NCBI GenBank assembly: GCA_002269645.1
Contig: NIVC01000210.1
Span: forward strand, 1-64,000
Direction of reading: 5' to 3'
DNA length: 64,000 nt
Source: Macrostomum lignano
Lineage: Eukaryota
Numbering within the stretch: position 1 is the stretch's first letter; each line of letters starts with the position of its first letter. Below, in pieces: positions 10,395 through 49,700 of this stretch. The notes beneath the pieces are model-generated. The model did no database searches. It was given only the letters and a program-made list of their open reading frames with translations, and had not been told where the DNA came from. The position numbers and the translations under genes are program-made.

Positions 10395-10662
10395 AGTAGT
10401 ATAGAAAAAGACGCTTCTAGATCAGACCTTATTTTAATGGCCGTTTGTAAGGTCTTAAGAGGGGGGACGCGAGGGGGGTGTTAGGGAGTGTTTGGAAGTG
10501 TTGGGAAGTGATTTTTATTGTTAGGGGTGATTATGGGTGATTAGATGTGTTAAGGGTGTTTAGATGTGTTTTTTTATTTACCCCCCGTGTCCCCCCTCTA
10601 GACCCTTAAAACGGTCATTAAAAAAGTGCTCTGGGTCTAGAAGCGTCTTTTTATATACTACT
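10395..10662. repeat. Polinton terminal region with an internal inverted copy of the terminus
   Basis: 10395 AGTAGTATAGAAAAGACGCTTCTAGA...GAGGGGGGACGCG versus reverse complement of the end AGTAGTATATAAAAAGACGCTTCTAGA...GAGGGGGGACACG. Confidence 0.85.
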
Positions 10663-12100
10663 ACGCTAGCAAAGTCGGATTGCAGCTTCGTAATCTCATG
10701 AGCTGCTGGCGCAGCCGCTGCCACCGCTGCCGCATCTTCATATTTGGCAGAGTCAGCAGCTGGCCTCAGCTTCTTTGAGGCCGCCACAGCAGCCTTACTA
10801 TCGCCGTATTCTTGAGCAGTTTTCAAAGCATCGGTATGAGCAGTTATATCGGCCTCTGAGAATTTCGGAGCTAACTCCGATTCAACAAGTTTACAAAGGT
10901 TTTCTAACTGCTGAAGCCGTTCGCCGTAAAACTCGTTCCAATCGGACAGAAGTTTTGCTTTCGTCTTCGCTAACCTTGCCGCCTTGCTTGCGGCTGCCTT
11001 CAGTGACTCAAGCTTGGCCTAACCAAAATGAAAGAGAAAATAGTTGTTGAAGTTTAGCTTCAGGACGTATCTATTCATGTGCAGAATGATTACGTAAATA
11101 ACTACCTATTTTTTAGCATATGTCAAACGTAGATTATATTCATCATTCGTCGGAAATTTACTACGAGAAATACAAAACTGATTGATTGTCGTTCCGCTAC
11201 GAAACGAGTAAAAACGGAGCAGAGGCTAAAGCCCACCCACCAAGCCACCAACATACGCACGCAGAGCCAAGCACCCCCTACCCAGCGCGGACAAGAGAGA
11301 GAGAGAACGTACGCAAAGCGACACAAGGCGTGGCAGAGGAGAGGGGTTTAAATTTGGATATTGACTAGTCAAGACCAATCACAAACCAACACATATATGT
11401 TTAAAGATCCTCGGCTAGCACCATTCTGACTAACATTTGTTTTAACGAAAGCTGCTTTCACATTGGAATTATACTTGGAGTACTGGAAAAAAAACAGCCA
11501 AACTTAATAATGTAAAACATGTTTCCAGATTAACTGGTTGTGAGGCACTGAGAAAATTTATTATTTATTATTCTTTGATTCTTTGATTCTTTTCTATGTC
11601 AGAATCAATTAAAATCACGCGAGACTATGCAGAATTTGAAATGTTGCGAAACAAGCTTTACCTGAAATTTACGTTGATCGTCGCTAAAATGTAAAGCGCA
11701 AAGATTCCGATCGCAGTGCTCGCAGAAGCCCATCGAAGGCTTCCCGCATGGTCTTTGAGCATCATTTTCCAAGGCTTCACATAGCAGTTTCTGTCTTTTT
11801 GTTTGACTTGTGACATCTTGTGGCGTAGCCTTAGCCACTTCAACCAGGGTGCGCAGATGGGAATTTTCAACCGGTCTTCGTCGCAAGTCCTCGAAGCACA
11901 GAGGGCATTTCGCACCACCGGATCCTGCCTCTTTTTTGACACTTTCGTAGCAGGCCAGGCACAGTGAATGGTGATTCGAGCACGCATAGTGTGGGTTATT
12001 AAAGTAATCGAGACACACCGGACAGGTAACATCGTTTATGTCGATTATAGAATTTCGTCTTCCAGCTAAAAGATACGAGCGTATAATGTATGATTATCAA

Positions 12101-13818: not shown

Positions 13819-14583
13819 ATGGTCGATATTGGAGAAGGCTATAAACTCCAAGTGCAAGAGTACGAAGGAGTACAGTTTATTGCGATTCGGAAATTTTATC
13901 GACATGGCAGCACAGCAAGTTTGAAACCTGGCGTTCCCGGATTTAACCTCAACATCCGACAATGGGAGAAGTTGAAAGAACTGAAGCGAACTCTCGTGAA
14001 GGCGGCCCTGGGCGAGCAACAGAGGGTCATCAAACTCGGTTTTGATAAGTTCGTTGAGGTAAAGAACGGCATCATCTGGCTAAGACGGCTTCCGGAAGAT
14101 TGTTGCGAAGAATTTTTGAAGCGAAACACTGTGGCGTTGGCACCAGCTCTGTGGCGGAAACTGTGGGAGCAGGCTGCATGGATCGACGAGCAGCTATCTG
14201 CCCCACTCCAAATGTCCGATGTGTATGAGCTGGAGTCGGGATCTTCCTCCGACAACATCGAAAATGAAGACGCGGAAGAGACCAAGCCGGTAGTGAAGAT
14301 GGAGGACTTGGAGGATGCTGCGCCTGCTGCTGCTGGCGATGTGGCTGGCATGCCATCCAATCTGCAAATCGACACAGCGTTTGCCACTTCAACGCCTCTG
14401 CAACTGAGCAAGCCTGCAGCTGGAGCGATTCCTCGGCAGGACACTGATCTGCAAGAGGACCCAGTCTGGTACCAGTTCCGAGCTCAAGCAGCCGCCGCTG
14501 AGAACGCCAGGAAACGCGAGCAGCCACCGTTCGCTCTGCGCAGATTGGTTGCCATGAAGCTGCCCAGGCCGTGCTTCGACTGA
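13819..14583 (+). CDS. Tandem PC4-like ssDNA-binding domain protein with low-complexity tail
   Basis: IGEGYKLQVQEYEGVQFIAIRKFY...PGVPGFNLNIRQWEKL fits the PC4 pattern; a second degenerate copy LGFDKFVEVKNG...LAPALWRKL follows. Confidence 0.75.
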   Translation: MVDIGEGYKLQVQEYEGVQFIAIRKFYRHGSTASLKPGVPGFNLNIRQWEKLKELKRTLVKAALGEQQRVIKLGFDKFVEVKNGIIWLRRLPEDCCEEFLKRNTVALAPALWRKLWEQAAWIDEQLSAPLQMSDVYELESGSSSDNIENEDAEETKPVVKMEDLEDAAPAAAGDVAGMPSNLQIDTAFATSTPLQLSKPAAGAIPRQDTDLQEDPVWYQFRAQAAAAENARKREQPPFALRRLVAMKLPRPCFD

Positions 14584-14743
14584 TTGCTGACCCTCTGACA
14601 TTGAGACAAACTCTGTGCTTTTTTTATCCAGACCTGCTTTCCATCTCTTTGTTTGAAAAAAATGCTTGTTTTCACATGCGCTATGCAATTTTCAATGTCT
14701 TAAGAAAAAACGAAAAATAAAATATGTTTCTTTGTTTCTGAAA

Positions 14744-15811
14744 ATGGAAAAAATTCATTTCAACCCAAATCAGCCTGCGAGCTGTTGCAGTTTTTCAAAA
14801 CTGCAACATGAACTGCGAAAAAGAGGCGAGCATATTGGAGTCAAGAGCATTGAGCAGTGTCTAAGTCAGCAGCCAGTACACACTCTGCATAAGCCAGCTA
14901 GAGTACGATTTCCAAGGGCGCCAATAATAGTGAGGGCCATTGATGATCAGTGGGAGATGGATGTGGTGAAAATGATTCCGTTTGCAAAGTATAATCGCGG
15001 GCATAAATACATTCTCACCTGCATTGATGTTTTATCTAAATTTGCAATGGCCCGAGCACTGAAGTCTAAAAGCGCGGCAGAAGTGAAATCTGCGTTTGAG
15101 AGCATGCTGAAGAGCTCAAAGCGGCAGCCGCGCACTGTCCGCACAGATCAGGGAAAGGAGTTTGTCAACGCAATTTTTCGCCAGTTCTGCATAGACCGGG
15201 GGATTCTGGCGTTTTCAACTAGCAGTGAGCACAAAGCAGCCATCATTTAAAGATGGAATCGAACTTTAAAAAGCAAGATGTGGCGTTACTTTACTCACAA
15301 CAGCACTCTACAATGGCTTGAAGTGCTGCCTAAACTGGTCAAGTCCTATAACAATACTTTCCACAGAAGCATCAAGACTACATCAATGAATGTCAGCAAA
15401 GCAAACGAGACTGAAGTGTGGATGAACCTTTATGATGGGAAAGCGATTGAGACAGTTGAGAAACTGAGAAAACCGAAGTTCTGTGAAAACCAATCAGTGC
15501 AGATTTCCAATGCACCCAGACTCTTCAGGAAGGGATACAAGGCGAACTGGAGCGAGGAGGTGTACACCATAGTGTTTAGGGCACCAAAGCATTATCCCTA
15601 CATGTACAGGATTCGAGACATGAAGGGGGAAGACATTAGAGGCCTCTTCCACGAGCATGAGCTGCAAGTTGTTCCGGACTCGCAGCGGCTGTATGTAATC
15701 GAGAAGGTTCTGAAGACTGAGAAGCGGAAGGGTAAGATCCGATATCTCGTCAAGTGGGCCGGCCACAAGTCCACTGACTGGGTGGATGAGAAGGACTTGA
15801 GAAAAGTGTAA
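14744..15811 (+). pseudogene. Polinton-type retroviral-like integrase with C-terminal chromodomain; one in-frame stop
   Basis: HTLHKP, DQWEMD, TDQGKEF, AII*RWNRTL (TAA at 15248-15250), KGYKANWSEE and chromodomain IEKVLK...YLVKWAG...WV. Confidence 0.93.
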
Positions 15812-15841
15812 GATACCGACATTGTGCAGCTATTCCCAACT

Positions 15842-16216
15842 ATGAGAAGCATAATCATTTGTAGCGAAAATGCTGAAGGTACTCCTAGTGACATTCATTT
15901 TCAACTGCCTTCACCTATTTACTTAGATCGAAATGTGGACTATGAGGCAGGTCTGGCTGAAATCCATCTGCCTGCTGCATGGTTCAATGTTGACGAGCCT
16001 TACTGCTTCACTGTCTCAGATGGAAGAGAGCATGAGACCCTGGTTCTTCAACCCGGACGCTTTGCTAGAGTGGAGGAACTGGTTGAGTGTGTTAATAAAA
16101 ACATAGCCGCTATGTTTTCAGCTTTGCTATGTTTACAGTCAGCCACCCAATGTCCAATGGTTTCATCAGCGCTTCCAGGTATTGAGCCCTTGTTGAATTC
16201 CCGCACGCTCCGCTAA
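15842..16216 (+). pseudogene. Truncated Polinton minor capsid (penton-like) protein N-terminus
   Basis: SDIHFQLPSPIYL...YEAGLAEIHLPAAWFNV matches the N-terminal pattern of Polinton minor capsid proteins; the ORF ends after about 125 aa. Confidence 0.7.
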
Positions 16217-18985: not shown

Positions 18986-20077
18986 ATTAATTCTCTCCCC
19001 AAAGGGGTTGGAGCACCCCCTGGCACCATTCTGCTTACGCCACTGGCATGCAGACCTGATAGTACCGTCTATAGGTCCCGAAAAATAGCAGATGTCCTTG
19101 CAAGCTTTCAAGTCCAGCTAGACCGCGCTGGCTGATCTGCCTTGGATTTTTATTTAGTCACGTTTTATCTTGTCTTATATAGCTAATTAATTAGGTATTC
19201 TCTCATTCTTACGATCCAATTGTAGTCACCACGTAGATAGTAATATTCACAGGATGGAGGAATAGGAAAAATTTAACGAAAAAAAGTTCGGCGACATCAT
19301 CCCACAACCAGCGCTGACTCCTGAGTACATAGAGGCACACCAATACTGTACGTAGGCACGCACTGATACAGACGCTAACACAGGGTGTACAGCGGCCCTG
19401 ACTTTCTGATCATCAGGCAGGTACACTCTCTGGTGGTGCCTTTTGAGTTGGCCCTCATGGACTAGCCAATTTTCGTGCACAAGCTCAAAATTAATGTGGC
19501 GCACTCCGTACGCTCGTAGTCTAATTTTGTCACGCGAGGTTTGTAATACGAGCGTATTCGGTTTTTTGATGGCCTCTGACGTAGAGGTTGCGATGACATA
19601 ACCATTTTGAGTTTTCCAAAAGTTGGATTAGGTTGAGTCTCACGTGATTTTACGGAGTGCCAGATTGCATCGCTCCTCATATTGGCCTTATTTGCCTGCC
19701 TATTCGATGCACTTTTGGCCGCGAAGAGAACGGGGGTAGGAATCTCTCCATACCGACTTTCTGTTCATTAAACTTGGATTGAAAGGCATTGAGATATACA
19801 AGCACGCAAAGCATCCAATATTTAGATGAAGCTTATTACTTTGAACCTAATGCCAATTTGCTTTATGTCTGCTTTGTTTCGAACGTCACGTCACTAGTGT
19901 TCATCGACAAGCGTCTCCCGAACAAATGAAATGTGTTCTCCGCTGATTGGTCAGTGTTCGACTTCAGAAGTATAGTTTTTTCCTACATGTCTCATTCTAT
20001 AAAGATTCTAGGCATGAAATTCTGCAATATTTAAGCTGACTTTGCTAATTAGCTAAGTTTTATTCGGAAAAAATAAC

Positions 20078-21052
20078 ATGGCCATTGAAAACGACTTCCG
20101 CTTTGCCCTAATCTCAATTGTGAGCGTGTCAACAGTCTTCAACGCCCTGTTTCTAATTTTTACAATTCAGAAAAAGATTGGCACCCGTCTCTGCACCGTC
20201 CTGTTGCGCAGTCAGTCAGCCATCGACTTGCTGCTCATCGGAGCAAACTTGCTGGTTATGCAGTTCAGTAGCTACCTGCCGGAACTCAGCCAGTCAATGC
20301 CAGACTTCATTTGGCAGCTCTACTGCAAACTGTACATGAGCCAGCTCCTCTATTGGGGTCTTGTCTGCATGAGCGTCTACAATATCCTGGCCATATCAAT
20401 TGAGCGCTGCATCTGTCTCTGCTGTCCGTTCTGGTATCGTTTAAACAAGCAAAAGCTGCTGGCAATGCTTGTCATGCTGATCATCGTTTCACCGTTTCTG
20501 GTTGAGGCACCGTACTGTCTGGCTGCGCGATCCGTTACTTACGTAGACAATGGAAACGGAACGTTTGTGACGGCTTGCCCGTACAATTTCGACCCAGAAG
20601 ACGAAAAAATCATTGGTATTTCCTATGTAACCTTGTTCTGGATTTTTCCTTTCTGTTTGATTGTACTGCTCTACTTGTTCATCATTTGCCAAATCCGAAA
20701 ATCGGTTGGCATGCGGGAGAGTGCAGCTGCTGGCAGCAGAAATGCCATCAGTGCCGCCGCAAAAAAACTGACCCTGACGACTGGCGTCACAGCGGCAGCC
20801 TTCGTGCTTCTATTCGCTATGGACAGCGTCACATTTCTGCTGTACAACATCGAGACAAGAATAGTCCTGCCACCGTTTTTTGGCGAACTGGACTCGTTCC
20901 TTGTGAGCATGAACAGCGCGGTAAATCCGCTAATCTACTTGATATTCATGCCGGAGTTTCGACGATTCTTGCTTTGCCGACGACGAGTTCAAAGCTCAAC
21001 TGGAAAAAACAGCGGCGCACAGCCAGGAGTCCCCGGTGCTGTGTCTGCTTAA
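20078..21052 (+). CDS. Class A (rhodopsin-like) GPCR, intronless, orphan
   Basis: Seven hydrophobic segments, ISIERC (DRY-equivalent), NSAVNPLIY (NPxxY), Cys in ECL1/TM3 and ECL2. Confidence 0.92.
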   Translation: MAIENDFRFALISIVSVSTVFNALFLIFTIQKKIGTRLCTVLLRSQSAIDLLLIGANLLVMQFSSYLPELSQSMPDFIWQLYCKLYMSQLLYWGLVCMSVYNILAISIERCICLCCPFWYRLNKQKLLAMLVMLIIVSPFLVEAPYCLAARSVTYVDNGNGTFVTACPYNFDPEDEKIIGISYVTLFWIFPFCLIVLLYLFIICQIRKSVGMRESAAAGSRNAISAAAKKLTLTTGVTAAAFVLLFAMDSVTFLLYNIETRIVLPPFFGELDSFLVSMNSAVNPLIYLIFMPEFRRFLLCRRRVQSSTGKNSGAQPGVPGAVSA

Positions 21053-23187
21053 AACTATCTGTGTCTGCAGACCATTGCGTTTGATCTAGACTGGGTTCTT
21101 AGAGTTCTTGGAGTAGTGCATGCACATTAGCTCTTTAGAGTCCACTTTTGTCTAATGAAACCAAAAAACAATTTTGTTATAACCGTAAAATGCAGTTCGA
21201 AGCAAATGAGTTATTTTCTACTTTATGAAATTTTCCACAAATTGCGATCGAACTTATAAAGCATTGTTCGTTTCTAATATTTTGTGAAATTTACTTTTTC
21301 AGCCTGAAAGCTCTCCGGAATCTTCGACTCGATGCGTCTAAACTTCATGTCCTGAAAAACGGGTAACGAAAATAGTTACATAGCTACATAGTTATTTAGT
21401 CTGATAATATATATCATTCCATAGCACGTTGTCAATCTACAAGAGCTATTAAGATTTCTGACTAGTAGCGTAATTGCTAAATGTTACTAAAATGGGACAT
21501 TTTTTGGTTCATGAAGCTGTATTAAGATCAATACGTCTTTTAATGCGCTTTTAATTGCAGTAACTTACAGATAGCTACTAGGAAATAAAAAACTTGTTCC
21601 ATTAAATGGATCGATGCACAAAAAGGCAATGCATTCGGGCACAATAGTCGGACCCGAAACATCAAATATCCCATCATATTTTCTTTTTTTCTTGTTATTG
21701 ATTGACTTCTTTACTGATAGACGTTAACTGAGACATCGATCGAAATGGATCTGGCCTAAGAATGAATCCAATTTATTTGTCTAGTTGCATCGCTGGACTA
21801 ACCACGCATTTTCCGGAGAAACTTAGTTGGGAAACAAAAAGGTTTATTTTCTTATTTATTTTCCGGAAATGAAAAACGCAAATGATTTTTTAAAAACTAC
21901 GGTTTTTTCTTGTGTAATTTGTTTTTTTCATTAATTTATTGGTTTCTATCAGTCGAACTTCGATTACTGTAAATGGGGCATCAATAATCCCGGAAAATTT
22001 TATGAAACAAATAACAAAGCATTGCTATTGCATTGGATTGTTCTAACTTTAAAAATTTCCCGAACAGTCACAAGGAAGAGAAAAGCAAAGAGCGTTCGGA
22101 GGAAATTTCAATTGTTCGTGTATACGAATTTCTACATGGCGAAACCCCATTTATCTTAGTGAGGCGAGAAAAGCAAAAAATATGAATAAATCTGTTGTGA
22201 AGACACAACTGTAGCCATGCTTATAATGTTCACTACCAAGTCTTTAATAATATGAGCTGTTTTTTCAAAGTACGAGTATTTTATGGACAAACTTTGCTGC
22301 ATTTGAAATCCGGAAGTCGAGAAGGCGAGAATCGTCATCAGTGCTGAGAAGCAGACAAATTCCTAACCGACCTCTGGTGAAACTTCTTCTAACTTAGTTG
22401 CCAGTCATGTTCTGCAATATTTCCACATTCTTATTTCAAGTGACGGGTCGAAGTTCTGAAAATAAAAATTCTAGGCCATGAAGATGAACAACAAAGACCA
22501 GGAACAAACCCAAATCGAAGAGTTATAACTTGATGAAGCTTTATTTAATATTCATTTAGGGTTAGGTTCTCCAAAAATGTGTAGCTAAACCAAACTAAAG
22601 AAGTAAATCTTGCCCGCAAACTGGAAGAGTTGTACATTTTCCAAAGATTTAAGGGGAGGAGGGCGCTATAGAAAAAGACAAGGCACGGCTTGAATTTAAA
22701 GCTCGTACAGTACATTCAAACAAAATAGCCAAAATGGTTCGAAAATCTACTTATGCAATTACTTTCGTTGAAATCTATGCAATATACAAAAATAAAAAGT
22801 CAAATATAGAAGTCTGTTTATTTTAAAGCCGTTTACGCTCGTGTGATTACCGATCAAGTATGGCTTACGTTTGATCATTTAGGGTAAAATTAAGAAATCT
22901 TAAAAGATTAAAAAAGTACACAAAACAAAAACAATGCGCAGAACGGAAGAGGAATCGATAAAATTCGATCTAGCTTATTGATTATTGACTTTTAGAAGCC
23001 ATATGCAATAAAAAATAGAAAAAAAAGAATTTTGTCGCCATTCACTTCACCAATACGCGGAACAGACGAATTCAGCCTTCATTCAGAGATGCTTGAACAC
23101 CAGCGCTACCGGTTGAGAAGTGAGCAACCTCTCGAACTCCACTATTTTGAGCCAAAACGGTGCGCGCAACGCTAGGGATATTGGTGC

Positions 23188-24988
23188 TCAACTTGATTGA
23201 TCCGAATGTTTGCTTATCCTGCTCCACTGAAATAAGAAAGATAGTGTTATAAAAGAAACTGCCAGTGGTAGGCCTGTAAAATTATTGCATTCAATCATTT
23301 CATCGTTATGCTTACGTTTGAAAGTTTTATCCTTGATGTCACCCTGAGCAAAGTGCTCGCCGAGATTTATCACAGTATTGCAGAAGGGCACTTTTAATGG
23401 TGAACTATCTGAGCAGCACAGCCGAATCGCTACATGCAGCTCTTTGTCGGGCAATTTCTGAAAGCTGTAGTTAAATGTTGCCATGTAGTTGAACTGGATT
23501 TCTAGTTCATCGCCACTGCGCTTGCACTTGTTAGAATTCGACAATTCTACTTTTGCTGAGTAGTTCCAGTTCCAGTCAGAGTTCATTTTAAATCCGACGG
23601 AACAGTTCGTTGCATCCGAGGGGAGAATTTCCTTCTGAAACTTTACGCTGACGATATTCAGATTGCAAGTTTTTGTTCGCGCAGCTCGAATGTAGAGCTG
23701 CATCATTTCGTCAGTGACGCTAGCAAACTCGGATTGCAGCCGTGTCGTTTCATGAGCTGCTGGCACAGCCGCTGCCACCGCTGCCGCATCTTCATATTTG
23801 GCAGAGTCAGCAGCCGGCCCCAGCTTCTTTGAGGCCGCTGCAGCAGCTTGAATATCGTCGAAGTCTAGAGCCGTTTTCAACGCGTCGATTTGACCAGTTA
23901 TATCGGCCTCTGAGAATTTCTGAGCTAATTCCGATTCAACAAATTTACTAAGGCTTTCCAACTGCTTTAACCGTTTGCCGTAAAAGTCTTTCCAATCGGA
24001 CAGAAGTTTTGCTTTCGTCTTCGCTAACACTGCCGCCTTGCTTGCGGCTGCCATCAGCGACTCGAACTCGGCCTAAATGAGAATTTTAGTTCAAGTTTGA
24101 ATTCTAGCTTCGGGACGCATCATTTTATGTGTAGAATATTTAAATAGCCGTTTAAAGGCTTTTGTCACTCCTCCGGTAGTAACAAAAAAAATATTGATTT
24201 TTTATGCAACGATTAAGAAAGCTTATTAATAAAAAAATAATAATAAACTAAATTTTGTTTTAACAAACTGCTTTAATATCGGAGTAATATCGGAGTAACG
24301 TCGTACTTGGAGTACTAGAAAAACAGTCAGTACTAGAACAGTTAATTTGAAACGTGTTTATAGATTTACGTGTGAGACGCTGAGAAATCCATAAACGAGC
24401 GTACTAAAAATGGTTTGTCGGTATCTAGCTCTAGGTATGCGATCGATTTCGAAGCAAACTTACTTGAAATAGAAGTCGATCGTCGCTATAATGTAAACCG
24501 CAAAGATTCCGATCGCAGTGCTCGCAGAAGCGCATCGAAGGTTTCCCGCATGGTCGCTGTTGAGCACCATTTTCTAAGGCTTCACATGGAGGCTTCTGGC
24601 TGTTTGTTTGTCCTGTCAAATCCTTTGGCGCAGCCTTGGCCGCCGCAACCAGGATGCGCAGCTGGGAATTCTCAACAGGTCTTCGCAAGTTCTCCTTGCA
24701 CAGCGGGCATTTCGCCTCCCTGGGTCCTGAGCTGCTAACAAAACCTTTGTAGCAGGCCAGGCACAGTGAATGGTGATTCGCGCACACATAGTGGGGGTTA
24801 TTAAAGAAGTCGAGACACACCGGACAGGTAACATCGTTCCTGTCGATTTTGGAATTTTGACTGCCAGCTGAAAAACAGATAATAAGATAAGCTAAAGTTA
24901 ATCCCACAGAGAATTAATATTATGCTGCAAGCTAAACTGCATTTAAAATTTTGAAACTCCGTAACTTACCTCCGCCTGAACCGCTCAT
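23188..24988 (-). CDS. TRIM-like copy 2: RING + B-box-like + coiled coil + C2-like domain, apparently intact (about 435 aa)
   Basis: Exons 24970-24988, 24464-24867 and 23188-24072 join in frame via GT-AG. RING CPVC...CANHHSLCLAC...CPLC; B-box-like CGKPSMRFCEHCDRNLCGLH; tail FNYMATFNYSFQKLPDKELHVAI...FCNTVINL is C2-like. Confidence 0.82.
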
Positions 24989-25347
24989 TGCAGTGTCAGT
25001 TAACTCAGCTCTTAGGTAAAACACTTCGAAAGAACTGCTTTGCCGGCTCTATATGTATTATTCTAGCCGCATGTACATCAAACCTCACACAGCCTACACA
25101 CAATTTATTTTTAACGCAAGCACTCTTCTCCTTGGGCAAGCTTTTCATTTTAAACACAATTGCATTGAGGCATCATTCAGACGTGCTTTTCTGCGCATGC
25201 AAATTTGTGCTATTATGCTTTCTTTTTGAGTAAGAATGGCCTTTCACATTGATGCGAGACAAACTGAAAATGAAATGGGTTATTGGCATCTAGTAGCTGG
25301 CTAAAAATAAACCTGTGGTCTGAAAGAACACTAGAAAATTCAAGAAA

Positions 25348-25348
<1 letters not shown>

Positions 25349-25390
<42 letters not shown>
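25349..25390. repeat. (TG)n microsatellite
   Basis: Direct reading. Confidence 0.98.
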
Positions 25391-25396
<6 letters not shown>

Positions 25397-25930
25397 ACGA
25401 ATTAAATTCGGTAATTTAGGCAATGCATTGCAAATTTATTAAATATTTATTAGACTCATAATTATAATTTCGGATAGCAACCGATATATTGAATACAGAT
25501 TAAGCAGTAACGAGGCAAAGATTACTAAAGTAGCGCTCGAAATTTATGGAAATGTTTTGAAGGCCACTTTTCGTCAAAAAATACACTAGTTTTCATTTTT
25601 CAATCGGGCATTAAAATCTCTTAACTTCTCTGAAAATGAAAACTTCCTATCTCCGTAGTGTATTTTTCGGCGAAAAGTGGCCTTCAAAACTTTTTCCATG
25701 AAACATGAGTGTTGCGTCCTGTGTATAGGTTGCTTTAGTTGTCCTTGTTACGAGGCTCCAGAGCGAGGGTGAGGAAATTATAATTTCCCCCAACATAAGG
25801 AAACTTAAAAATTTTGGAATTTAACATAAATGTACAAAATAAATACTACTTCAACGCGCATGGTAAGTAGTACGGTATACTGTACGTAATTTGATAAAAT
25901 TTTAATAACGCCTCACTATTTATCAGTATC

Positions 25931-26700
25931 GTATCGACAGTATCGACAGTATCGACAGTACCGACAGTATGGACAGTACCGACAGTATCGACAGTACCGA
26001 CAGTACCGACAGTACCGACAGTACCGACAGTACCGACAGTATCGACAGTACCGACAGTACCGACAGTACCGACAGTATCGACAGTACCGACAGTACCGAC
26101 AGTACCGACAGTATCGACAGTACCGACAGTACCGACAGTACCGACAGTATCGACAGTACCGACAGTACCGACAGTACCGACAGTATCGACAGTACCGACA
26201 GTACCGACAGTATCGACAGTACCGACAGTACCGACAGTACCGACAGTACCGACAGTACCGACAGTACCGACAGTATCGACAGCACCGACAGTATCGACAG
26301 TACCGACAGTACCGACAGTATCGACAGTATCGACAGTATCGACAGTACCGACAGTATCGACAGTATCGACAGTACCGACAGTATCGACAGTACCGACAGT
26401 ACCGACAGTACCGACAGTATCGACAGTATCGACAGTACCGACAGTACCGACAGTATCGACAGTACCGACAGTACCGACAGTACCGACAGTACCGACAGTA
26501 CCGACAGTATCGACAGTACCGACAGTATCGACAGTACCGACAGTACCGACAGTATCGACAGTATCGACAGTACCGACAGTACCGACAGTACCGACAGTAT
26601 CGACAGTACCGACAGTACCGACAGTATCGACAGTATCGACAGTACCGACAGTACCGACAGTATCGACAGTATCGACAGTACTGACAGTACCGACAGTATC
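25931..26700. repeat. 9-bp tandem array (CGACAGTAY)n, about 85 units, mixed T/C variants
   Basis: Direct reading; both AGTATCGAC and AGTACCGAC units are interleaved. Confidence 0.97.
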
Positions 26701-27129
26701 TAGTAGCTACTTTAATAATACTCATGTTAATACATAAAAATGCCAGGCGACCGCTATTTTAAAAGCTAAAGCTTTTAAATTACATGTCTGAATTACATGT
26801 TCATTTTACACGTTACACGTTTCTGAATTACAGGTTCCAGGACGCCCTTGGAAACCTTAGAGCTCTTGTAGACATATTTCGCGACAGTAAGATACCATAA
26901 AAAAAAAATTCTCGCGAACCAGCTCTACAAGAGCTCGAAGGTTTCCAAGGGCGTCCTGGAACCTGCAGTAAGCGTACCATAGTCTTTGTACATTTACTTC
27001 TGAATTTCTTTGAATTAGACTCATTCATTGACAGAATCTCAGTCGCCACCTGGAGACTAGACCCAGCAAATCTATCGGTCTTTCCGTTAGTCTCTCTCTT
27101 ATTTACCACCAATCAACAAAAGAAGAGCA

Positions 27130-27650: not shown

Positions 27651-28182
27651 GGGTCCCTCGGCATGCGAAACGCGCGGAACATTTACACAAGTGTTTTGCA
27701 GCTGCTTCGGGTTGGCTGGCATAGTCGCATAGAAACTGTTTGCTCTGGAACTGCTGGCGACGGCTCAAATTTTGGTCCATGAAGATGTTTGCTCTGCGCC
27801 CGACTACAGGAGTTTCTGGTGTTACATATGCATGCCTAAATTGGTTTACAGCCCACCCAGACTTTTCTGGAATTGGCAATCAAGAAAAGCAGAGAAACCA
27901 TGTTAGCTTTCTTCTGCGGAATTTCCTGACATTCTCGGTCGCCTAAGCGATGCTGAATGTTTTTTGCCAGGAAATTCATTTTGCAGCTCACTTACAAGAG
28001 AACTTTCTAATACTGGCGAACCCTTTGTCGGCGTCTTGAGGCGTTGAAATTTCAACAAACTTGTAATAATTTTCTCGCCTTGCAGTCGCTATGGTGATAT
28101 AAAATTTTTTACACAGAAAGCTGTTTTTTCTTTCTAGAGCTGTATTAACTTTTTATTAGTATTGATTTTTACGTAGTTTCAA

Positions 28183-28874
28183 CGACAGTATCGACAGTAT
28201 CGACAGTATCGACAGTATCGACAGTATCGACAGTATCGACAGTATCGACAGTATCGACAGTATCGATAGTATCGACAGTATCGACAGTATCGACAGTATC
28301 GACAGTATCGACAGTATCGACAGTATCGACAGTATCGACAGTATCGACAGTATCGACAGTATCGACAGTATCGACAGTATCGACAGTATCGACAGTATCG
28401 ACAGTATCGACAGTATCGACAGTATCGACAGTATCGACAGTATCGACAGTATCGACAGTATCGACAGTATCGATAGTATCGACAGTATCGACAGTACCGA
28501 CAGTATCGACAGTATCGACAGTATCGACAGTATCGACAGTATCGACAGTATCGACAGTATCGACAGTATCGACAGTATCGACAGTATCGACAGTATCGAC
28601 AGTATCGACAGTATCGACAGTATCGACAGTATCGACAGTATCGACAGTATCGATAGTATCGACAGTATCGACAATATCGACAGTATCGACAGTATCGATA
28701 GTATCGACAGTATCGACAGTATCGACAATACCGACAGTACCGACAGTATCGACAGTATCGACAGTACCGACAGTACCGACAGTATCGACAGTATCGACAG
28801 TACCGACAGTACCGACAGTATCGACAGTATCGACAGTATCGACAGTAACGACAGTACCGCCAGTACCGACAGTA
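28183..28874. repeat. 9-bp tandem array (CGACAGTAT)n, about 77 units, mostly the T variant
   Basis: Direct reading; same unit and orientation as 25931-26700. Confidence 0.97.
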
Positions 28875-28970
28875 TAGATACTCAACAGTAGATACTCAAC
28901 AGTATTATAGTTTTAGTTCATTAGTCAGAGTACTTCAATTCAGTGTGCAAGTCGATGCAGTGGAAGTCCT

Positions 28971-29861
28971 CTACCGGACCAGAATCGCCAGGTAGTCGGC
29001 AACCCGACCGTGATCTTTCCACGTAGCGTTGATACCCAAATTGTAGAGGATCGTTGGAAAAGTAGTAAAATTAAAAAACGTGCACCAATCGCTGGGGGTG
29101 TCAATGATCACCATGGAGCCAGTATCCGTCGGGCATAGCTGGGAAAATATGTTTATGAAAAAACGTCGCCTAACCAGGGAGCCAGACACGGAACCTTCGA
29201 GGCTGAATTCGTTGAACTTTTCGTTTTTCAGATTCGTTATGGGGGCCGTCTCGATAAGTCTCTGACGGGTGAACCAACTGGTCTGGTTCACTCGCTCAGC
29301 AGCGGTTCCAACATCGAACACCCATCGCATCACAACAGATGAGTTTCTGTAGACCTGCACAATGAACTGCTTGTAGACTAGGCTAGAAATCAATCGCTGC
29401 ATGTCATTGAGCAGACTCGACCTGAATGCGGCGGGCAGGGTTGCAGCCTCCGGGTGAGCCGGCTGGATCACGTAGTCGAATTCGGCAGCAACAGAATTGA
29501 ACAGCTCCCAGGCTTTTTGACCGCTGCCGCTCTTGATGCTGAAGACGACGTGCTCAAGAGCGATGCGGCTAAGAGGCATTTTCAGAGTGTAGCTGCAGCT
29601 GCTTGAGCAGAGCTTGTATCGAGGGCACAGTGACGCAATCAACTGACACGACTTTCCGGAGTTCTCGAAAACTATGGCTGAAGGGTCGGTGGACATGGCA
29701 GCCGCGATTGAGCATTGCAGTTTGTCTCTGGTGACCAAGGTGGCAGTCACTGAGCAGTTCGGGTACAAGGCGTACTGCTTAAACTCAACTCTCTTAGTTG
29801 GACACGTCAGCAAAGTTGCGGCTGCACTCTGTGCCAACAGAAGCAATACAAGCAGAATCAT
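28971..29861 (-). CDS. Secreted protein family member 1 (signal peptide + Cys-rich PAN-like N-terminus + uncharacterised C-terminal domain)
   Basis: MILLVLLLLAQSAAA signal peptide; shares CPRYxLCS, FRSxxLxDMQRLIS, RRFFIN and LAILVR with 30398 and 35792. Confidence 0.85.
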   Translation of the reverse strand: MILLVLLLLAQSAAATLLTCPTKRVEFKQYALYPNCSVTATLVTRDKLQCSIAAAMSTDPSAIVFENSGKSCQLIASLCPRYKLCSSSCSYTLKMPLSRIALEHVVFSIKSGSGQKAWELFNSVAAEFDYVIQPAHPEAATLPAAFRSSLLNDMQRLISSLVYKQFIVQVYRNSSVVMRWVFDVGTAAERVNQTSWFTRQRLIETAPITNLKNEKFNEFSLEGSVSGSLVRRRFFINIFSQLCPTDTGSMVIIDTPSDWCTFFNFTTFPTILYNLGINATWKDHGRVADYLAILVR

Positions 29862-30397: not shown

Positions 30398-31309
30398 ATG
30401 AATAACTTTCTCCCACTAATTGTACTGCTCTATAACGTCATCTTCAATTTTCATTTTGCAACATTAACTGCCTGTAGCTCTAAAAGGCTTCAGTACAGAA
30501 AGTATGGCTTCCTGCCCAACTGCTCCGAGTCCCTCACGCTGAGCACCGGACGCGCTCACGATTGCGTTATGGCTGCAGCTTTGTCACCCGCCCTGTCTGC
30601 TGCGATCGTGTCTACTTCCGAGGCCGAATGTCACGTGACCACCGCCCAGTGTCCTCGCTACCTGTTGTGTTCCACTGACTGTCCCTACACCGTGCTCATT
30701 CCTGCCAGTGTGCTTAACAGCTTCGAGCACATCGTGATGAGCGTGAAGGGCGGCTGCGGTTTCAAAGTGTGGAACGTGCTGACTGGGTCGGCACTGCGCC
30801 CTGACCCTGCCGTTCAGCCAGCTCACCAAGACGCCGCCGACCTACCGGACGCCTTCCGCTCGAACGTTCTCGACGACATGCAGCGCCTGATCTCCGGCCT
30901 GACCTTCAAGCAGCTCATCGTGCAGCTGTACAAGAACTCCGCTGTGGTTGTGAGGCTCGTGTTTGAAGTCGGGACGAACTCCTCCAGTGTCAACCTGATG
31001 AACTGGTTCAGCAAGGAGCGTCTCGTACAGAGCTGGCCGGTGACCAACCTCGCCAACATGAGCACGAACTTCTTCAGCATCAAAGGAGAAAATAGAGGCT
31101 TGTTTCAGAGACGCTTTTTTGTCAACTTTAACTATGGTGGCTGCAATAATGACCGCGGGCTCATGGCAGTCTTGGATTCCAACGATGACGATTGCGCAGC
31201 ATACCAATACTCACAGCCGATTCCTCGAATCGTGTTTAGTTCGGATCCCAGTCGCACAATGGCGACGACAATTCAGGATGCCGAACATTTTGCCATTTTG
31301 GCGCGCTAA
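30398..31309 (+). CDS. Secreted protein family member 2
   Basis: 303-aa intronless ORF with signal peptide and RRFFVNFNYGGCNNDRG motif. Confidence 0.88.
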   Translation: MNNFLPLIVLLYNVIFNFHFATLTACSSKRLQYRKYGFLPNCSESLTLSTGRAHDCVMAAALSPALSAAIVSTSEAECHVTTAQCPRYLLCSTDCPYTVLIPASVLNSFEHIVMSVKGGCGFKVWNVLTGSALRPDPAVQPAHQDAADLPDAFRSNVLDDMQRLISGLTFKQLIVQLYKNSAVVVRLVFEVGTNSSSVNLMNWFSKERLVQSWPVTNLANMSTNFFSIKGENRGLFQRRFFVNFNYGGCNNDRGLMAVLDSNDDDCAAYQYSQPIPRIVFSSDPSRTMATTIQDAEHFAILAR

Positions 31310-32797: not shown

Positions 32798-33969
32798 CAC
32801 CAAGCACCAAGCACCAAGGGGCTTTAGCACCAAGGGGCTTTAGCACCAAGAGGCTTTAGCACCAAGGGGCTTTAGCACCAAGGGGCTTTAGCACCAAGAG
32901 GCTTTAGCACCAAGGGGCTTTAGCACCAAGGGGCTTTAGCACCAAGAGGCTTTAGCACCAAGGGGCTTTAGCACCAAGGGGCTTTAGCACCAAGGGGCTT
33001 TAGCACCAAGGGGCTTTAGCACCAAGGGGCTTTAGCACCAAGGGGCTTTAGCACCAAGGGGCTTTAGCACCAAGGGGCTTTAGCACCAAGGGGCTTTAGC
33101 ACCAAGAGGCTTTAGCACCAAGGGGCTTTAGCACCAAGGGGCTTTAGCACCAAGGGGCTTTAGCACCAAGGGGCTTTAGCACCAAGGGGCTTTAGCACCA
33201 AGGGGCTTTAGCACCAAGGGGCTTTAGCACCAAGGGGCTTTAGCACCAAGGGGCTTTAGCACCAAGGGGCTTTAGCACCAAGGGGCTTTAGCACCAAGGG
33301 GCTTTAGCACCAAGGGGCTTTAGCACCAAGGGGCTTTAGCACCAAGGGGCTTTAGCACCAAGGGGCTTTAGCACCAAGGGGCTTTAGCACCAAGGGGCTT
33401 TAGCACCAAGGGGCTTTAGCACCAAGGGGCTTTAGCACCAAGGGGCTTTAGCACCAAGGGGCTTTAGCACCAAGGGGCTTTAGCACCAAGGGGCTTTAGC
33501 ACCAAGGGGCTTTAGCACCAAGGGGCTTTAGCACCAAGGGGCTTTAGCACCAAGGGGCTTTAGCACCAAGGGGCTTTAGCACCAAGGGGCTTTAGCACCA
33601 AGGGGCTTTAGCACCAAGGGGCTTTAGCACCAAGGGGCTTTAGCACCAAGGGGCTTTAGCACCAAGGGGCTTTAGCACCAAGGGGCTTTAGCACCAAGGG
33701 GCTTTAGCACCAAGGGGCTTTAGCACCAAGGGGCTTTAGCACCAAGGGGCTTTAGCACCAAGGGGCTTTAGCACCAAGGGGCTTTAGCACCAAGGGGCTT
33801 TAGCACCAAGGGGCTTTAGCACCAAGGGGCTTTAGCACCAAGGGGCTTTAGCACCAAGGGGCTTGAGCACCAAGGGGCTTTAGCACCAAGGGGCTTTAGC
33901 ACCAAGGGGCTTTAGCACCAAGGGGCTTTAGCACCAAGGGGCTTTAGCACCAAGGGGCTTTAGCACCAA
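32798..33969. repeat. 16-bp tandem array (GCACCAAGGGGCTTTA)n, about 72 units
   Basis: Direct reading; near-homogeneous, with a few AAGAGGC variants. Confidence 0.98.
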
Positions 33970-35791
33970 AAGTCCAAGCTCTGACTCATATCTACTATCA
34001 GTTCCCTTTTATATTTCCCTATTAGACAAAAGGGCAAAAGAAGATTCTCAGAATATTTGTTTGGATAGCCAATTCATCTGGATCCCATTTAGCTCCACTC
34101 TGCCACAAGTATTCCATGAGTTTATATGCTATCGTGATATGATTCCGCTATCTTCCGAACGGAAAGTTGCAAAAGTCAAAATTCCATGTCACCTACATGT
34201 AGCTCTTCCTGCCATTCACAAATCCAATTCGAGGATAGCATGGAGGATTCGAGGATAAAGCTGGACAGTCAGAAAAAATCATGCAGTTTAGATGGAATTT
34301 CTACATCTACCTCATAAATTGTATGCATTGAGAAGTCCCTTATTTAATTAAATTCTGTCAGCCATCGCAAATATGTAACAATTGTTTCCAGATTCATTTG
34401 CCAGCCCGAAAGATTATTCGGCTCAGGTATAACATTGATTTTTTCAGAGCGGGGCAGTAGTGCTTGCGCTGGTCTCTTTCCTGTATTTTCTTTTCCGCTC
34501 TCCTCATGGGCGCGCTGGATTAAGCGAGAACCGCAGCACGAAAGAAGATCTCTAACATTTTTGGTAGCTACAGCTACCAAATCCTCAGTGGCCACCCTTT
34601 GTATAACAAAGGAATGTGGAGGGCAGGTGGGTTAAGCAAAAAAAGCATTCTTGTTTTCCCACCGTGTGTCTGGGCTTCAATGCAGCGAAGTCAAGCAGGT
34701 CCAACATGTTCAATGAGGAGGTCCAAAGCTTGGATGAAAAAAATCGATATTACTCGGCTCTGCATGATACAATATCGATTTTTTCAGAGCGGGTGGCTGC
34801 AGTAGTGTTTGCCCCGATCTCTTTCCGGCCTTATCTTCTCTCTTTTCTCCTCGTGGGTACCCTGGAGAGAGCGTCTCCAGCATTTTTCAGCAGTTATCCA
34901 GACAGCACAGCTTCAGTGTAGTGGATTTTTTACCTTTGTCAGAAGCCAGGTCTTGAGACAAGAATTTGGCCTCCAGGGTCTTCAGGTGCATACGCGTAGA
35001 ATATTTTGAGTTTCTATAGAAGCCTTCTAATTTCAGCAAAGTTACTGTAAATTTAAAGTGCCATGAAATTTATTTATTAGCTACCTTGTACAGTTGATTC
35101 AATGTAGTTAATTCGGCATTTTAATTTCGACTTGGGACAGAACTTTTGCATGCACTGGAGCTCCTTCGGGCAACTGGCACTTGGAGTTCTACGAGCTAAT
35201 TAGACTCGTGCTGTTTATAATATAAATTTACTGAGACAGCTAGGAACATTTTTATGATACCTTATTTTTTAGGACGGACAGGACCATGTGCTGATGTTGA
35301 ATTACGTTGGGCAGCATAAGAGATAAAATACTTCTAATCCTTCTTTAGGAACAATGAACATGGAATTAATCGGATTATGGTGGCAGGGGAAAATTCTCTT
35401 AAGTATTATGTTGGAAGATATTCGAGCTCATTCGAAACCCGCATACTACCGATATCTGTAGTAATAACGAATATAGAATCCACGCAATTACGAAGGAAGC
35501 GAATTATTCCCCATTATGCTTACCACTTGTCTACCCAATCAAGTAACCCGAATTGAAGCAGGAGTTGATGAGCAGGTTGCAGCAGCCGGAGGCTTTTTGT
35601 TAGATTTCCTCATTCGCTGCGTCAATCTTCGCCAATGAATGCCAAGGCATCACAGGAGAGTCTACTGATACAGATAAATACCAAAGTCCACAGTAAGCTA
35701 CAACATCCCGCGTTTTCGCTCCCACAGCGGCAAAAAGAACGATTTCTGCATGTAAAGCTTTGCTGTTTTGCTTATCTATTCAGAAATAAAA

Positions 35792-36703
35792 ATGGGAACT
35801 CTACGTCTCATAACGCTAGTATTATATGCGATCGTGAGTACATTCTCTTCGAAAGTGATTGCTGATTGCACCCATAAGCAATTGCAGTACAAGCGACACG
35901 CATTTCGTCCGAACTGCTCTGACCTGATGACGCTGAGCACAGGAAGTGCTCAAGATTGCGTTATGGCTGCAGCTGTGTCTCCCGTCCAGTCTGCCGCGGT
36001 CGTGTCTACTTCCGAAGCCGAATGTCACGTGACCACCGCCCAGTGTCCTCGCTACCTGCTATGCTCCACCGACTGTCCCTACACTGTGCTCATGCCTGCC
36101 AGTGTACTCAACAGCCTCGAGCACATCGTGATGAGCGTGAAGGGCGGCTGTGGTTACAAGATATGGGACGTGCTGACTGGGTCGGCATTGCCACCTGACC
36201 CTGTTGTCCAGCTGGCCCCTCCCAGCGCAGCTGCCCTGCCGAACGTCTTCCGCTCGAGCGTGCTGGACGACATGCAGCGCCTGATCTCCGGTCTGACCTT
36301 CAAGCATCTCATCGTGCAGCTGTACAAGAGCTCCACCGTGGTTGTGAGGCTTGTGTTCGATGTCCGGACGAACTCCGCCAGTGTCAACCTGACGAACTGG
36401 TTCAGAAAGGAGCGTCTCGTACAGAACTTGCCGGTCACCAACCTCGCCAACATAAGCACGAACTTCTTCAGCATCGAGGGCGCCACTGACTATACAAACT
36501 TGAGAAGATTTTTCATTAACTATAGCTACGGCGGATGCGACATTGACAAAGGGTTTATGGCTATTCTAGATTCGAAAAATGATGTTTGCTCCATGTACCA
36601 GTTTTCAGAGCCGATTCCTCGCATTGTCTTCAGTTCAGATCCGACAAAGTCGATGGCCTCAACACTTCAAATTGCCGACTACATGGCTATTCTAGTGCGC
36701 TAG
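35792..36703 (+). CDS. Secreted protein family member 3 (close paralog of 30398-31309)
   Basis: Start MGTLRLITLV at 35792; long near-identical stretches with member 2 (STSEAECHVTTAQCPRYLLCSTDCPYTVL). Confidence 0.88.
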   Translation: MGTLRLITLVLYAIVSTFSSKVIADCTHKQLQYKRHAFRPNCSDLMTLSTGSAQDCVMAAAVSPVQSAAVVSTSEAECHVTTAQCPRYLLCSTDCPYTVLMPASVLNSLEHIVMSVKGGCGYKIWDVLTGSALPPDPVVQLAPPSAAALPNVFRSSVLDDMQRLISGLTFKHLIVQLYKSSTVVVRLVFDVRTNSASVNLTNWFRKERLVQNLPVTNLANISTNFFSIEGATDYTNLRRFFINYSYGGCDIDKGFMAILDSKNDVCSMYQFSEPIPRIVFSSDPTKSMASTLQIADYMAILVR

Positions 36704-46561: not shown

Positions 46562-47200
46562 TTATTCTGGAATGCCACCGCAAGTTCTAGTTGCAGTGTC
46601 GATTACGGTGTCCAGCTTTGATTTACAAGCTTCAATTTCCTTTTTCTGCTCACTGGTTTGAGGCAACCCGAAAGCTTTCGATTCCAGCTTGGGCGCTTCA
46701 GCAGTAGCAGCTTTCAGCCGGTCTGCGATGGCTTTGGCTTCCTGCATTTGGAAAGATTGAAGGGATTTTTGCAGGCCCTCCGTCTCAGCCCCTCGGGAAG
46801 ACCCAGCAGCTGCCTGCTCCAGCCTCTGCTCTGTGGTTCTCAGCAGCTTCTCCAGGTGCTCTTTTTTCTTACCGATAAATTCGATAAGATTTTTTGATTT
46901 GAGCTTTCCAAGGCTGCAGTGTAGCGCTGACTTGTGCGCATTCCTTTGCGTCCTTCTCCACTGTGTTCAACAGGTTCAGGCATTCAGTCTAAAATATAAG
47001 CGTTCCGTCTTATTAATTTGAATTCGAATAAATCTTAAATACTTCAGGTTCCATTACCTGAAACTTCGATCGATGATCGCTGAAGTGCACATCACAAAGA
47101 TTCTTGTCGCAGTGACCGCACTTGACGAGGATCGAGTAGGAGCATTGGCTTTCGCCTTCGCCTGCGCTAAAATAAGTGCCTGCGGCGCTAAAGTCAGTGC
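46562..47200 (-). pseudogene. TRIM-like copy 4: RING deleted, B-box remnant + frameshifted coiled-coil exon
   Basis: QCSYSILVKCGHCDKNLCDVHFSDHRSKFQ then GT...TTTTAG then TECLNLLNTVEKDAKEC; one extra A in a poly-A run shifts the frame. Confidence 0.8.
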
Positions 47201-48928: not shown

Positions 48929-49700
48929 ATGAGCTCAAGAGACGACGAAGACCTGAAGTGCCCGGTGTGCAAATACATCTTTACTGATCCGTGCTTCATG
49001 TGCCCAAACCACTACACTCTGTGCCGCAAATGTCACAAACGCGTTTTGGAGATGTCCCTTTTTGGACCCGCAAAGTGTCCGGTGTGCCGAAAGATGCTTT
49101 CCACACCAACAGAGCACGCCTCCATGGCCAGGATCGTCAAAAAATCCAACTCAAAACCGCCGCCCAGCGCCACCTACCAGGTACGCGAACAGAGATCCCG
49201 GTGCTTCAACTCAGTCTTTGTCAAGTGCGGCCACTGCGACCTGAATGTTTCCAATCTGCACTTCGTTGAAAATCGGATGCAGTTTCAGGTCATTTAAGCT
49301 TAAGTATTTAGCAGGTATTAACTCGAAAACACATAATACGGAACGCTTGCCTTGCCAGACTGAATGCGAGAACTTGTTAAAATCTGTGGGGAATGACGCG
49401 AAGTAATGCGACAAAGTCAGCGCTAAACTGCAGCCTTAGAAAGCTCAGATCACTAACCTTAGCAAATTTATCGATCTAGAAAAAAGCGCTTAGAGCAGCT
49501 CTAGAGAACCACAGAGCAGAGGCTGGAGCAGGCAGCGGCTGGGTCCTCCCGCCGAGCTGAGGCAGACAGCCTCAGCGCCGAAGCTGGAGTCGCAAGATTT
49601 CGGACCGCCTCCAACCGATGAGCAGAAGAATGAAATCGAAGCTTGCAAAGCAAGGCTGGTCTCCATAATCGGGACTGCAACACGAACTTTGGGTGGTGTC
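48929..49700 (+). pseudogene. TRIM-like copy 5: intact RING/B-box exon, coiled-coil exon with nonsense mutations
   Basis: Exon 48929-49288; the next exon starts at 49359 (ACT GAA TGC) and hits TAA after 15 codons, with further stops downstream. Confidence 0.82.

Follow-up and report, generated by a model that had tools for sequence, protein, structure and literature searches.

What kind of domain closes a TRIM-like protein, and what could that domain recognise, are the questions raised by a minus-strand gene in a stretch of 64,000 nucleotides from Macrostomum lignano (contig NIVC01000210.1, positions 1 to 64,000). This whole stretch, at its full length of 64 kb, is called the window here, and the coordinates of the gene and of its C-terminal tail are those of the window. 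The gene is referred to as copy 2, since a closely related, shorter copy 1 lies elsewhere in the window. A preliminary description, made from the letters of the DNA, had read copy 2 as a RING/B-box/coiled-coil protein fused to a C2-like domain, and had proposed a membrane-sensing E3 ubiquitin ligase that could detect membrane damage. To our knowledge, C2 is not among the TRIM C-terminal classes C-I to C-XI (PRY-SPRY, NHL, COS-FN3, PHD-bromo, filamin, MATH, ARF). The gene is already in public databases, where its tail stands without any annotation.

By means of exhaustive sequence searches, profile comparison, structure prediction and comparison with a second copy of the locus, we examined the tail, the modules that precede it and the DNA around them. 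Judged by its alignments, the tail is a diverged member of the RPGRIP1 RID (RPGR1_C) class of type II C2 beta-sandwiches. The protein as a whole is probably a TRIM-like putative E3 (RING, B-box-like cluster, coiled coil) with this diverged RID-type C2 as its C-terminal specificity domain.

Results

Structure of the gene

Reading of the minus strand from 25300 to 22900 gives four exons with GT-AG junctions and a spliced product of 444 amino acids (Table 1). The strings in which the preliminary description had seen a C2-type beta pattern, together with the one that it placed just before them (NLNIVSV, YSAKV, FNYMATFNY, LHVAI, FCNTVINL and ASVTDEM), are all present in the minus-strand open reading frame (ORF) 23188-24054, and they do belong to the RING/helical gene. 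The interval 23188-23720 that had been assigned to the domain holds only in part, as its last 128 nt (23188-23315) consist of intron and of exon 4 read out of frame. That ORF reads through the 89-nt intron 3 and so leaves out some 50 residues of the true tail; the domain continues to about 23147. After ..DKTFK, exon 4 resumes in a different frame with LEQDKQTFGSIKLSTNIPSVARTV, the spliced junction between exons 3 and 4 being ..DKTFK/LEQDKQ... Past 23147, exon 4 encodes 24 C-terminal residues that are modelled with low confidence, and the stop codon lies at 23074-23072.

Relationship of the tail to RID domains

When the tail served as the query of a word-index search, only its own gene in M. 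lignano was returned. The link to a known family came from an exhaustive phmmer search over 1.84 billion representatives, in which the query was the tail of PAA54387.1, a protein 95% identical to the product of copy 2. This search gave three matches besides the gene itself, among them A0A1I8J8Y7 (P0007) at E 8.5e-4. Two better-scoring matches, P0005 and P0006, are repeat proteins, one of them bacterial, each of which owes its score to 7-12 weak stretches added together, and we judged them spurious. The only match of the tail in a sequence search of the PDB, to a caspase (E 0.85), was also put down to chance.

A0A1I8J8Y7, which is also from M. lignano, carries the RPGR1_C (PF18111) domain twice in tandem, recognised by Pfam at E 1.4e-17, and it matches the RID of RPGRIP1 in the PDB (4qam_B) at E 7e-7. 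When the window tail was compared with it by BLASTP, the two aligned at E 1e-12 with about 25% identity, collinearly over the whole domain and across the junction of exons 3 and 4. They have a C-terminal motif in common, G-S-I-x-x-S-T-N-x-P-S (GSIKLSTNIPS in the tail, GSITISTNLPS in A0A1I8J8Y7), and the exon 4-encoded ..QTFGSIKLSTNIPSVARTV aligns with the ends of the second domain of A0A1I8J8Y7 and of the human RID chain 4qam_B.

A profile of the RID class was then built from the 4qam_B segment and three M. lignano RID domains, with the tail sequence excluded. The tail aligns with this profile in hhalign at a probability of 95.3% (E 2e-8, 156 columns), and a hidden Markov model of the same profile gives it 26.8 bits, whereas none of 5000 shuffled tails exceeded 7.5 bits. 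Searched by word index, the profile yielded just further M. lignano RID proteins, and consequently the depth of the alignment stayed low.

Predicted fold of the tail

The alignment given to AlphaFold for the tail had six rows: the tail, an allele of it and M. lignano RID domains. The resulting model is a beta-sandwich core followed by a C-terminal helix (pLDDT 64, pTM 0.62), in which the block encoded by exon 4, that is the last strands and the helix, reaches pLDDT 82-83. A single-sequence AlphaFold model, made without RID input, already has about eight strands in the tail. When the tail model was compared with the PDB by Foldseek, C2 domains made up 48 of the 50 best matches, with probabilities of 0.97-1.00 and target-normalised TM-scores of 0.5-0.61. 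The best E-value was 5e-5 (1wfj), the MCTP2 C2 had a target-normalised TM-score of 0.61, and the 50 best also held the C2 domains of Ci-VSP/PTEN, dysferlin C2A and extended synaptotagmin. The description of the fold as C2-like is thus supported by the AlphaFold model and the C2 matches in Foldseek, and we consider it very likely that the tail adopts a C2 fold. As a particular variant, the NT-C2 (the N-terminal C2 of EEIG1/EHBP1) was rejected, since Pfam gave no match to it, the present domain is C-terminal and no NT-C2 structure was among the best Foldseek matches.

The core of the preliminary description, a RING and helical protein with a C-terminal C2-like domain, is supported, and the profile alignment, the distance in bits from the shuffled tails and the Foldseek matches show the C2-like character of the tail to be more than chance. 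It had suggested AlphaFold and Foldseek as the check on the tail, and had named a non-C2 fold or removal of the tail by splicing as what would speak against it; the tail is predicted to fold C2-like, and it is kept in the transcript-derived PAA54387.1.

The tail might also be another kind of beta-sandwich, and the sequence links mere chance between compositionally similar beta-rich segments. Such an explanation would suit the absence of a direct Pfam match, the better E-values of spurious repeat proteins in the exhaustive search, and an AlphaFold model of moderate confidence that was steered by an alignment holding RID proteins. We regard it as very unlikely, because the match to A0A1I8J8Y7 is collinear from end to end, including a C-terminal motif that lies on a separate exon, because the tail stands 19 bits above the best of the 5000 shuffles and reaches 95% in hhalign, and because the strands of the single-sequence model appeared independently of any RID protein.

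Type of C2 domain

A C2 fold would equally fit a classical Ca2+/phospholipid-binding domain, and the protein could then be a membrane-sensing E3 ligase, as the preliminary description had proposed. Many of the Foldseek neighbours are lipid-binding (MCTP2, dysferlin C2A, extended synaptotagmin and PTEN/Ci-VSP being among these neighbours), and combinations of a membrane-targeted C2 with an E3 do exist. The NEDD4 family has the order C2-WW-HECT, with an N-terminal Ca2+/lipid-binding C2 and a HECT catalytic domain, and so resembles the present protein in joining a C2 fold and a ubiquitin-ligase module; here, however, a C-terminal C2 of RID type is joined to a RING module, and homology ends at the fold. 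Ca2+-binding C2 domains carry acidic clusters of about five residues in their top loops. By eye, and set against the usual C2 pattern, the loop after strand 1 of the tail (..LPSDATNC..) and the loop before ..VPFCNTVINL (..CCSDSSPLK..) have one Asp each, and the canonical acidic positions of the Ca2+ loops, located by inspection only, are mostly Cys, Ser or Asn. Furthermore, Foldseek likeness speaks for the fold and not for the ligand, whereas the sole detectable sequence relatives of the tail are RID domains. RIDs are reported to be C2 domains of type II that have the canonical sandwich, bind no Ca2+ and/or phospholipids and mediate protein-protein interaction, with RPGR as the partner (PMC4519163). 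A lipid-binding tail is consequently quite unlikely in our estimate, and the proposed role in sensing membrane damage loses its footing.

Since the relatives of the tail are of RID type and its acidic loop positions look unoccupied, we read the tail as a protein-binding module; by analogy, we infer that it would act as the specificity module of a TRIM-like E3 and not as a Ca2+/phospholipid binder. In addition to RPGR, which RIDs are reported to bind by its RCC1-like domain, a second partner has been reported for this class, the RID of Rpgrip1l binding the proteasome subunit Psmd2 (PMC4494006). As far as analogy can guide, precedents for RID targets are confined to RCC1-like propellers and the proteasome lid.

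RING finger, Cys/His cluster and helical region

The N-terminal RING finger is of the C3HC4 type and spans residues 21-63 (24826-24698), with all eight ligands in place (C21, C24, C35, H38, C42, C45, C60 and C63). Pfam RING models match it at E 8e-5 to 7e-4, every one under its curated cut-off, and its best PDB matches are the RINGs of TRIM31, TRIM30, TRIM5, TRIM34 and TRIM21 (E 1.3e-6 to 3e-4). It is followed by a Cys/His cluster with the pattern C-x7-C-x2-C-x4-C-x2-H at residues 101-132 (24586-24491), which is kept in five window paralogs. The cluster, a candidate B-box, has the appearance of a B-box2 that begins at its second half, and a weak alignment with TRIM3 in the PDB search (E 0.064) covers the protein from the RING through the cluster. 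Further on, the single-sequence AlphaFold model of the full protein (overall pLDDT 40) predicts helices at residues 132-190, 196-210, 212-230 and 234-272, with low confidence (pLDDT about 45-52 there).

The RING/B-box/coiled-coil architecture of the preliminary description therefore stands for the RING, which has all its ligands and has TRIM RINGs as its nearest matches, while the second module is better termed B-box-like on account of its Cys/His cluster, and the coiled coil corresponds to helices in a low-confidence model. The order of RING, second Cys/His cluster, long helical region and C-terminal domain is that of TRIM or RING, B-box, coiled-coil (RBCC) proteins, as is membership of a tandem family. 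Unlike in those proteins, the B-box-like cluster escapes Pfam and its first ligand pair is missing.

Transcript support and constraint

With the spliced protein as the query, a word-index search found PAA54387.1 of M. lignano (BOX15_Mlig013468g1, P0002), which has 444 amino acids, is 95% identical, and has the same junctions and the same N-terminus as the window gene. The contig that carries it (Mlig_3_7, NIVC01002920.1; locus L001) runs collinear with positions 35772-19286 of the window at about 96% identity, and by its sequence would be either another haplotype or a duplicated block; in the M. lignano assembly, duplicated blocks of at least 95% identity amount to about 180 Mb (PMC5730564). 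Because the GenBank gene models of Mlig_3_7 were derived from RNA-seq transcript assemblies (PMC5730564) and PAA54387.1 has the junction of exons 3 and 4, this junction is transcript-supported for the allelic copy. No mention of Mlig013468 expression was found in the literature searched or in two supplementary data sets.

The exons of both copies align without gaps, the 19 nt of exon 1 are identical in L001, and intron 3 has 89 nt in the window and in L001 alike (97.8% identity). An open frame and canonical splice sites are kept in both haplotypes, the flanking DNA being about 4% divergent. Between the window and L001, the ratio of non-synonymous to synonymous substitution rates (dN/dS) is 0.20 for the tail (10 synonymous and 8 non-synonymous changes), 0.16 for the C2 core, 0.14 for the exon of the RING and B-box-like cluster and 0.50 for the helical region. 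The counts are small, and the value for the tail fits purifying selection, as on a maintained domain. As for the helical region, PAA54387.1 is a mosaic, the first half resembling copy 1 and the remainder copy 2 (L001 10862-11282 compared with window 11087-10663 and 24072-23650). Such a pattern points to gene conversion involving copies 1 and 2, and the mosaic explains the raised dS and dN of that region.

The tandem family and the end of copy 1

Searching the window by tblastn with the copy-2 protein, we found the RING exon five times, in addition to one fragment, and the tail once only. By sequence, the locus is a tandem cluster of TRIM-like genes. Copy 1 is 68-69% identical to copy 2 in protein sequence, and tblastn covers only residues 7-146 and 123-261 of copy 2 in it; the four further members of the family listed in Table 1 are 32-37% identical in the RING exon. 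Copy 1 stops exactly after ..FASV (the equivalent of V260), the residue preceding the tail region, and no C2 tail of copy 1 was found by tblastn within the 64-kb window.

The breakpoint of copy 1 is abutted by a short insert like a miniature inverted-repeat transposable element (MITE), whose 33-nt arm sequence occurs in the window at its two ends alone, and copy 1 does not resume beyond it. Beyond the 280-bp insert there are about 80 bp of unrelated DNA, followed by a low-GC, virus-like element. The latter has a large minus-strand gene (5065-7898) with an endonuclease VII domain, in which family-B DNA polymerase motifs were recognised by eye; this gene is split over two reading frames, either by a single change of frame or by an intron that went unrecognised. 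On the plus strand, the element has fibre-like ORFs at 479-2369, in which there is an F5/8 type C domain. Sequence searches of Pfam, PHROGs and the PDB gave no match of the low-GC element to a polymerase, capsid, ATPase, protease or integrase family. The preliminary description had held that a Polinton separates the tail region from copy 1. An insertion does cut copy 1 at the boundary of the coiled coil and the C2; the name Polinton was not confirmed, since the same searches gave only endonuclease VII and fibre-like F5/8 type C matches. The low-GC element is bordered on its right by a perfect 30-nt inverted repeat (10212-10241 and 10280-10309, with a 38-nt spacer), which may be a terminal hairpin-like structure.

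Surroundings rich in repeats and transposons, a truncated neighbour and window paralogs that have no tail are also what one would expect if copy 2 belonged to a tandem family that evolves fast and were itself decaying, its tail non-functional or the whole copy a pseudogene. This is highly improbable given a frame that is open and splice sites that are canonical in two haplotypes about 4% apart in their flanks, a dN/dS of 0.20 in the tail and an allelic gene model derived from transcripts.

Other features of the window

Between copies 1 and 2, a separate integrase-bearing mobile element of about 48% GC occupies 13819-16216 on the plus strand. A single-exon gene for a rhodopsin-family G protein-coupled receptor lies at 20078-21052 on the plus strand (7tm_1, E 4e-16), and paralogs of it with about 70% identity are found at the point where the allelic contig ceases to be collinear with the window. 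Three paralogous ORFs of about 300 amino acids (28971-29861 on the minus strand, 30398-31309 and 35768-36703 on the plus strand) have hydrophobic N-termini and no Pfam match, and their products are probably secreted. Long microsatellite or minisatellite arrays with 6-nt and 9-nt units at 25916-26725 and 28156-28885 create artificial ORFs of 190-270 amino acids in several frames, and an array with a 16-nt period at 32855-33969 has a copy number unlike that of the allelic contig. Rfam gave no match on either strand of 19000-27000.

Table 1. Positions of the exons of copy 2, of its relatives and of mobile DNA in the window.
Feature	Position	Strand	Remarks
Copy 2, exon 1	24988-24970	-	ATG and 6 codons; the next intron (GT-AG) has 102 nt
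Copy 2, exon 2	24867-24464	-	RING finger and B-box-like Cys/His cluster
Copy 2, exon 3, first part	24072-23677	-	Long helical (coiled-coil-type) region, residues 142-273
Copy 2, exon 3, second part	23676-23316	-	N-terminal ~120 residues of the C2/RID-like domain, residues 274-393
Copy 2, intron 3	23315-23227	-	89 nt; donor GTAAGC, 3' end TTTCAG
Copy 2, exon 4	23226-23072	-	End of the C2 domain: final strands and C-terminal helix (residues 394-420, up to 23147)
Copy 1	12066-10665	-	RING/B-box-like exon 12066-11647; coiled-coil exon 11081 to ~10665
RING/Cys-His cluster/helical paralog	39860-38821	-	Beta tail absent
Further family member	46562-47162	-	Without C2 tail
RING/Cys-His cluster/helical paralog	48929-49297	+	Beta tail absent
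RING/Cys-His cluster/helical paralog	51963-52986	+	Beta tail absent
MITE-like insert	10389-10668		280 bp; 33-nt inverted repeats, 94% complementary; abuts the breakpoint of copy 1
Low-GC (27-34%) virus-like element	1 to ~10310		Continues past the left end of the window
PC4-like domain ORF	13819-14583	+	
rve integrase core	14666-15250	+	E 2e-16
Weak chromodomain	15278-15811	+	

Discussion

The tail of copy 2 has its nearest relatives in the RPGR1_C proteins of M. lignano itself (A0A1I8J8Y7, A0A1I8H1D6, A0A1I8GPY1 and A0A1I8H3X0), with which it has the C-terminal motif in common. Unlike copy 2, those proteins carry one or two RIDs and neither a RING nor a B-box, and the divergence from them is deep, so that the tail is no recent copy of theirs. 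With the RID of RPGRIP1 and RPGRIP1L it has in common what appears to be a homologous C2-type beta-sandwich (95% in hhalign), a similar length class, a C-terminal helix after the last strand, and a place at the C-terminal end of a protein with a long coiled coil. It differs from them in that it is only 17-25% identical, has a shortened helical insert between the middle strands and is missed by the Pfam model. The host differs as well, being here a RING protein with one C2, whereas RPGRIP1 and RPGRIP1L are ciliary transition-zone scaffolds with N-terminal coiled coils and two further C2 domains. In the literature searched, we found no account of a RING/coiled-coil protein that carries an RPGR1_C-type domain.

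Several results count against the reading of copy 2 as a TRIM-like protein with a RID-type tail. The tail has no Pfam match at E<=10, the RPGR1_C (PF18111) model included, and the human RID by itself gave no signal against it; since both miss it, the link to the RID class depends on the M. lignano intermediates. P0005 and P0006 outscored A0A1I8J8Y7 in the phmmer search, and therefore library E-values near 1e-3 need extra controls. With regard to structure, 4qam_B was not within the 50 best Foldseek matches, and the tail model has only moderate confidence and came from an alignment that contained RID proteins. In the N-terminal half, zf-B_box was unmatched by Pfam in the window protein even at E<=10, and the coiled coil is taken from the low-confidence AlphaFold model. 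Finally, the dN/dS of the tail is drawn from just 18 substitutions.

The arrangement of a TRIM-like putative E3 with a C-terminal RID-type C2, which we hold to be the probable one, would lend itself to the following mode of action. By analogy with TRIM proteins, the RING would recruit ubiquitin-charged E2 (E2~ubiquitin) and the helical region would dimerise the protein; by analogy with TRIM proteins and with the RID family, the C-terminal C2 would recruit a protein target. A bolder proposal, which we think rather unlikely and put forward as speculation, is that copy 2 represents an undescribed, flatworm-lineage class of TRIM-like ligases with a ciliary-type RID as the substrate recogniser. If this were true, it would link RING-dependent ubiquitination with a partner that is RPGR-like (RCC1 propeller) or belongs to the proteasome lid, for instance at ciliary bases in a heavily ciliated animal; alternatively, the gene would be one arm of an expanding, possibly immune, cluster of TRIM-like genes.

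The basis for reading the protein as a sensor of membrane damage is removed by these results, and the unusual combination of domains remains. For M. lignano proteins that public databases call only 'hypothetical' or 'RING-type domain-containing', a domain assignment is gained. The specificity of TRIM-type ligases comes from their C-terminal domain, and few kinds of domain are known in this position; a further class would be gained with a RID-type C2 on an RBCC scaffold, which would also show that a 'ciliary' protein-binding C2 has been reused outside transition-zone scaffolds.

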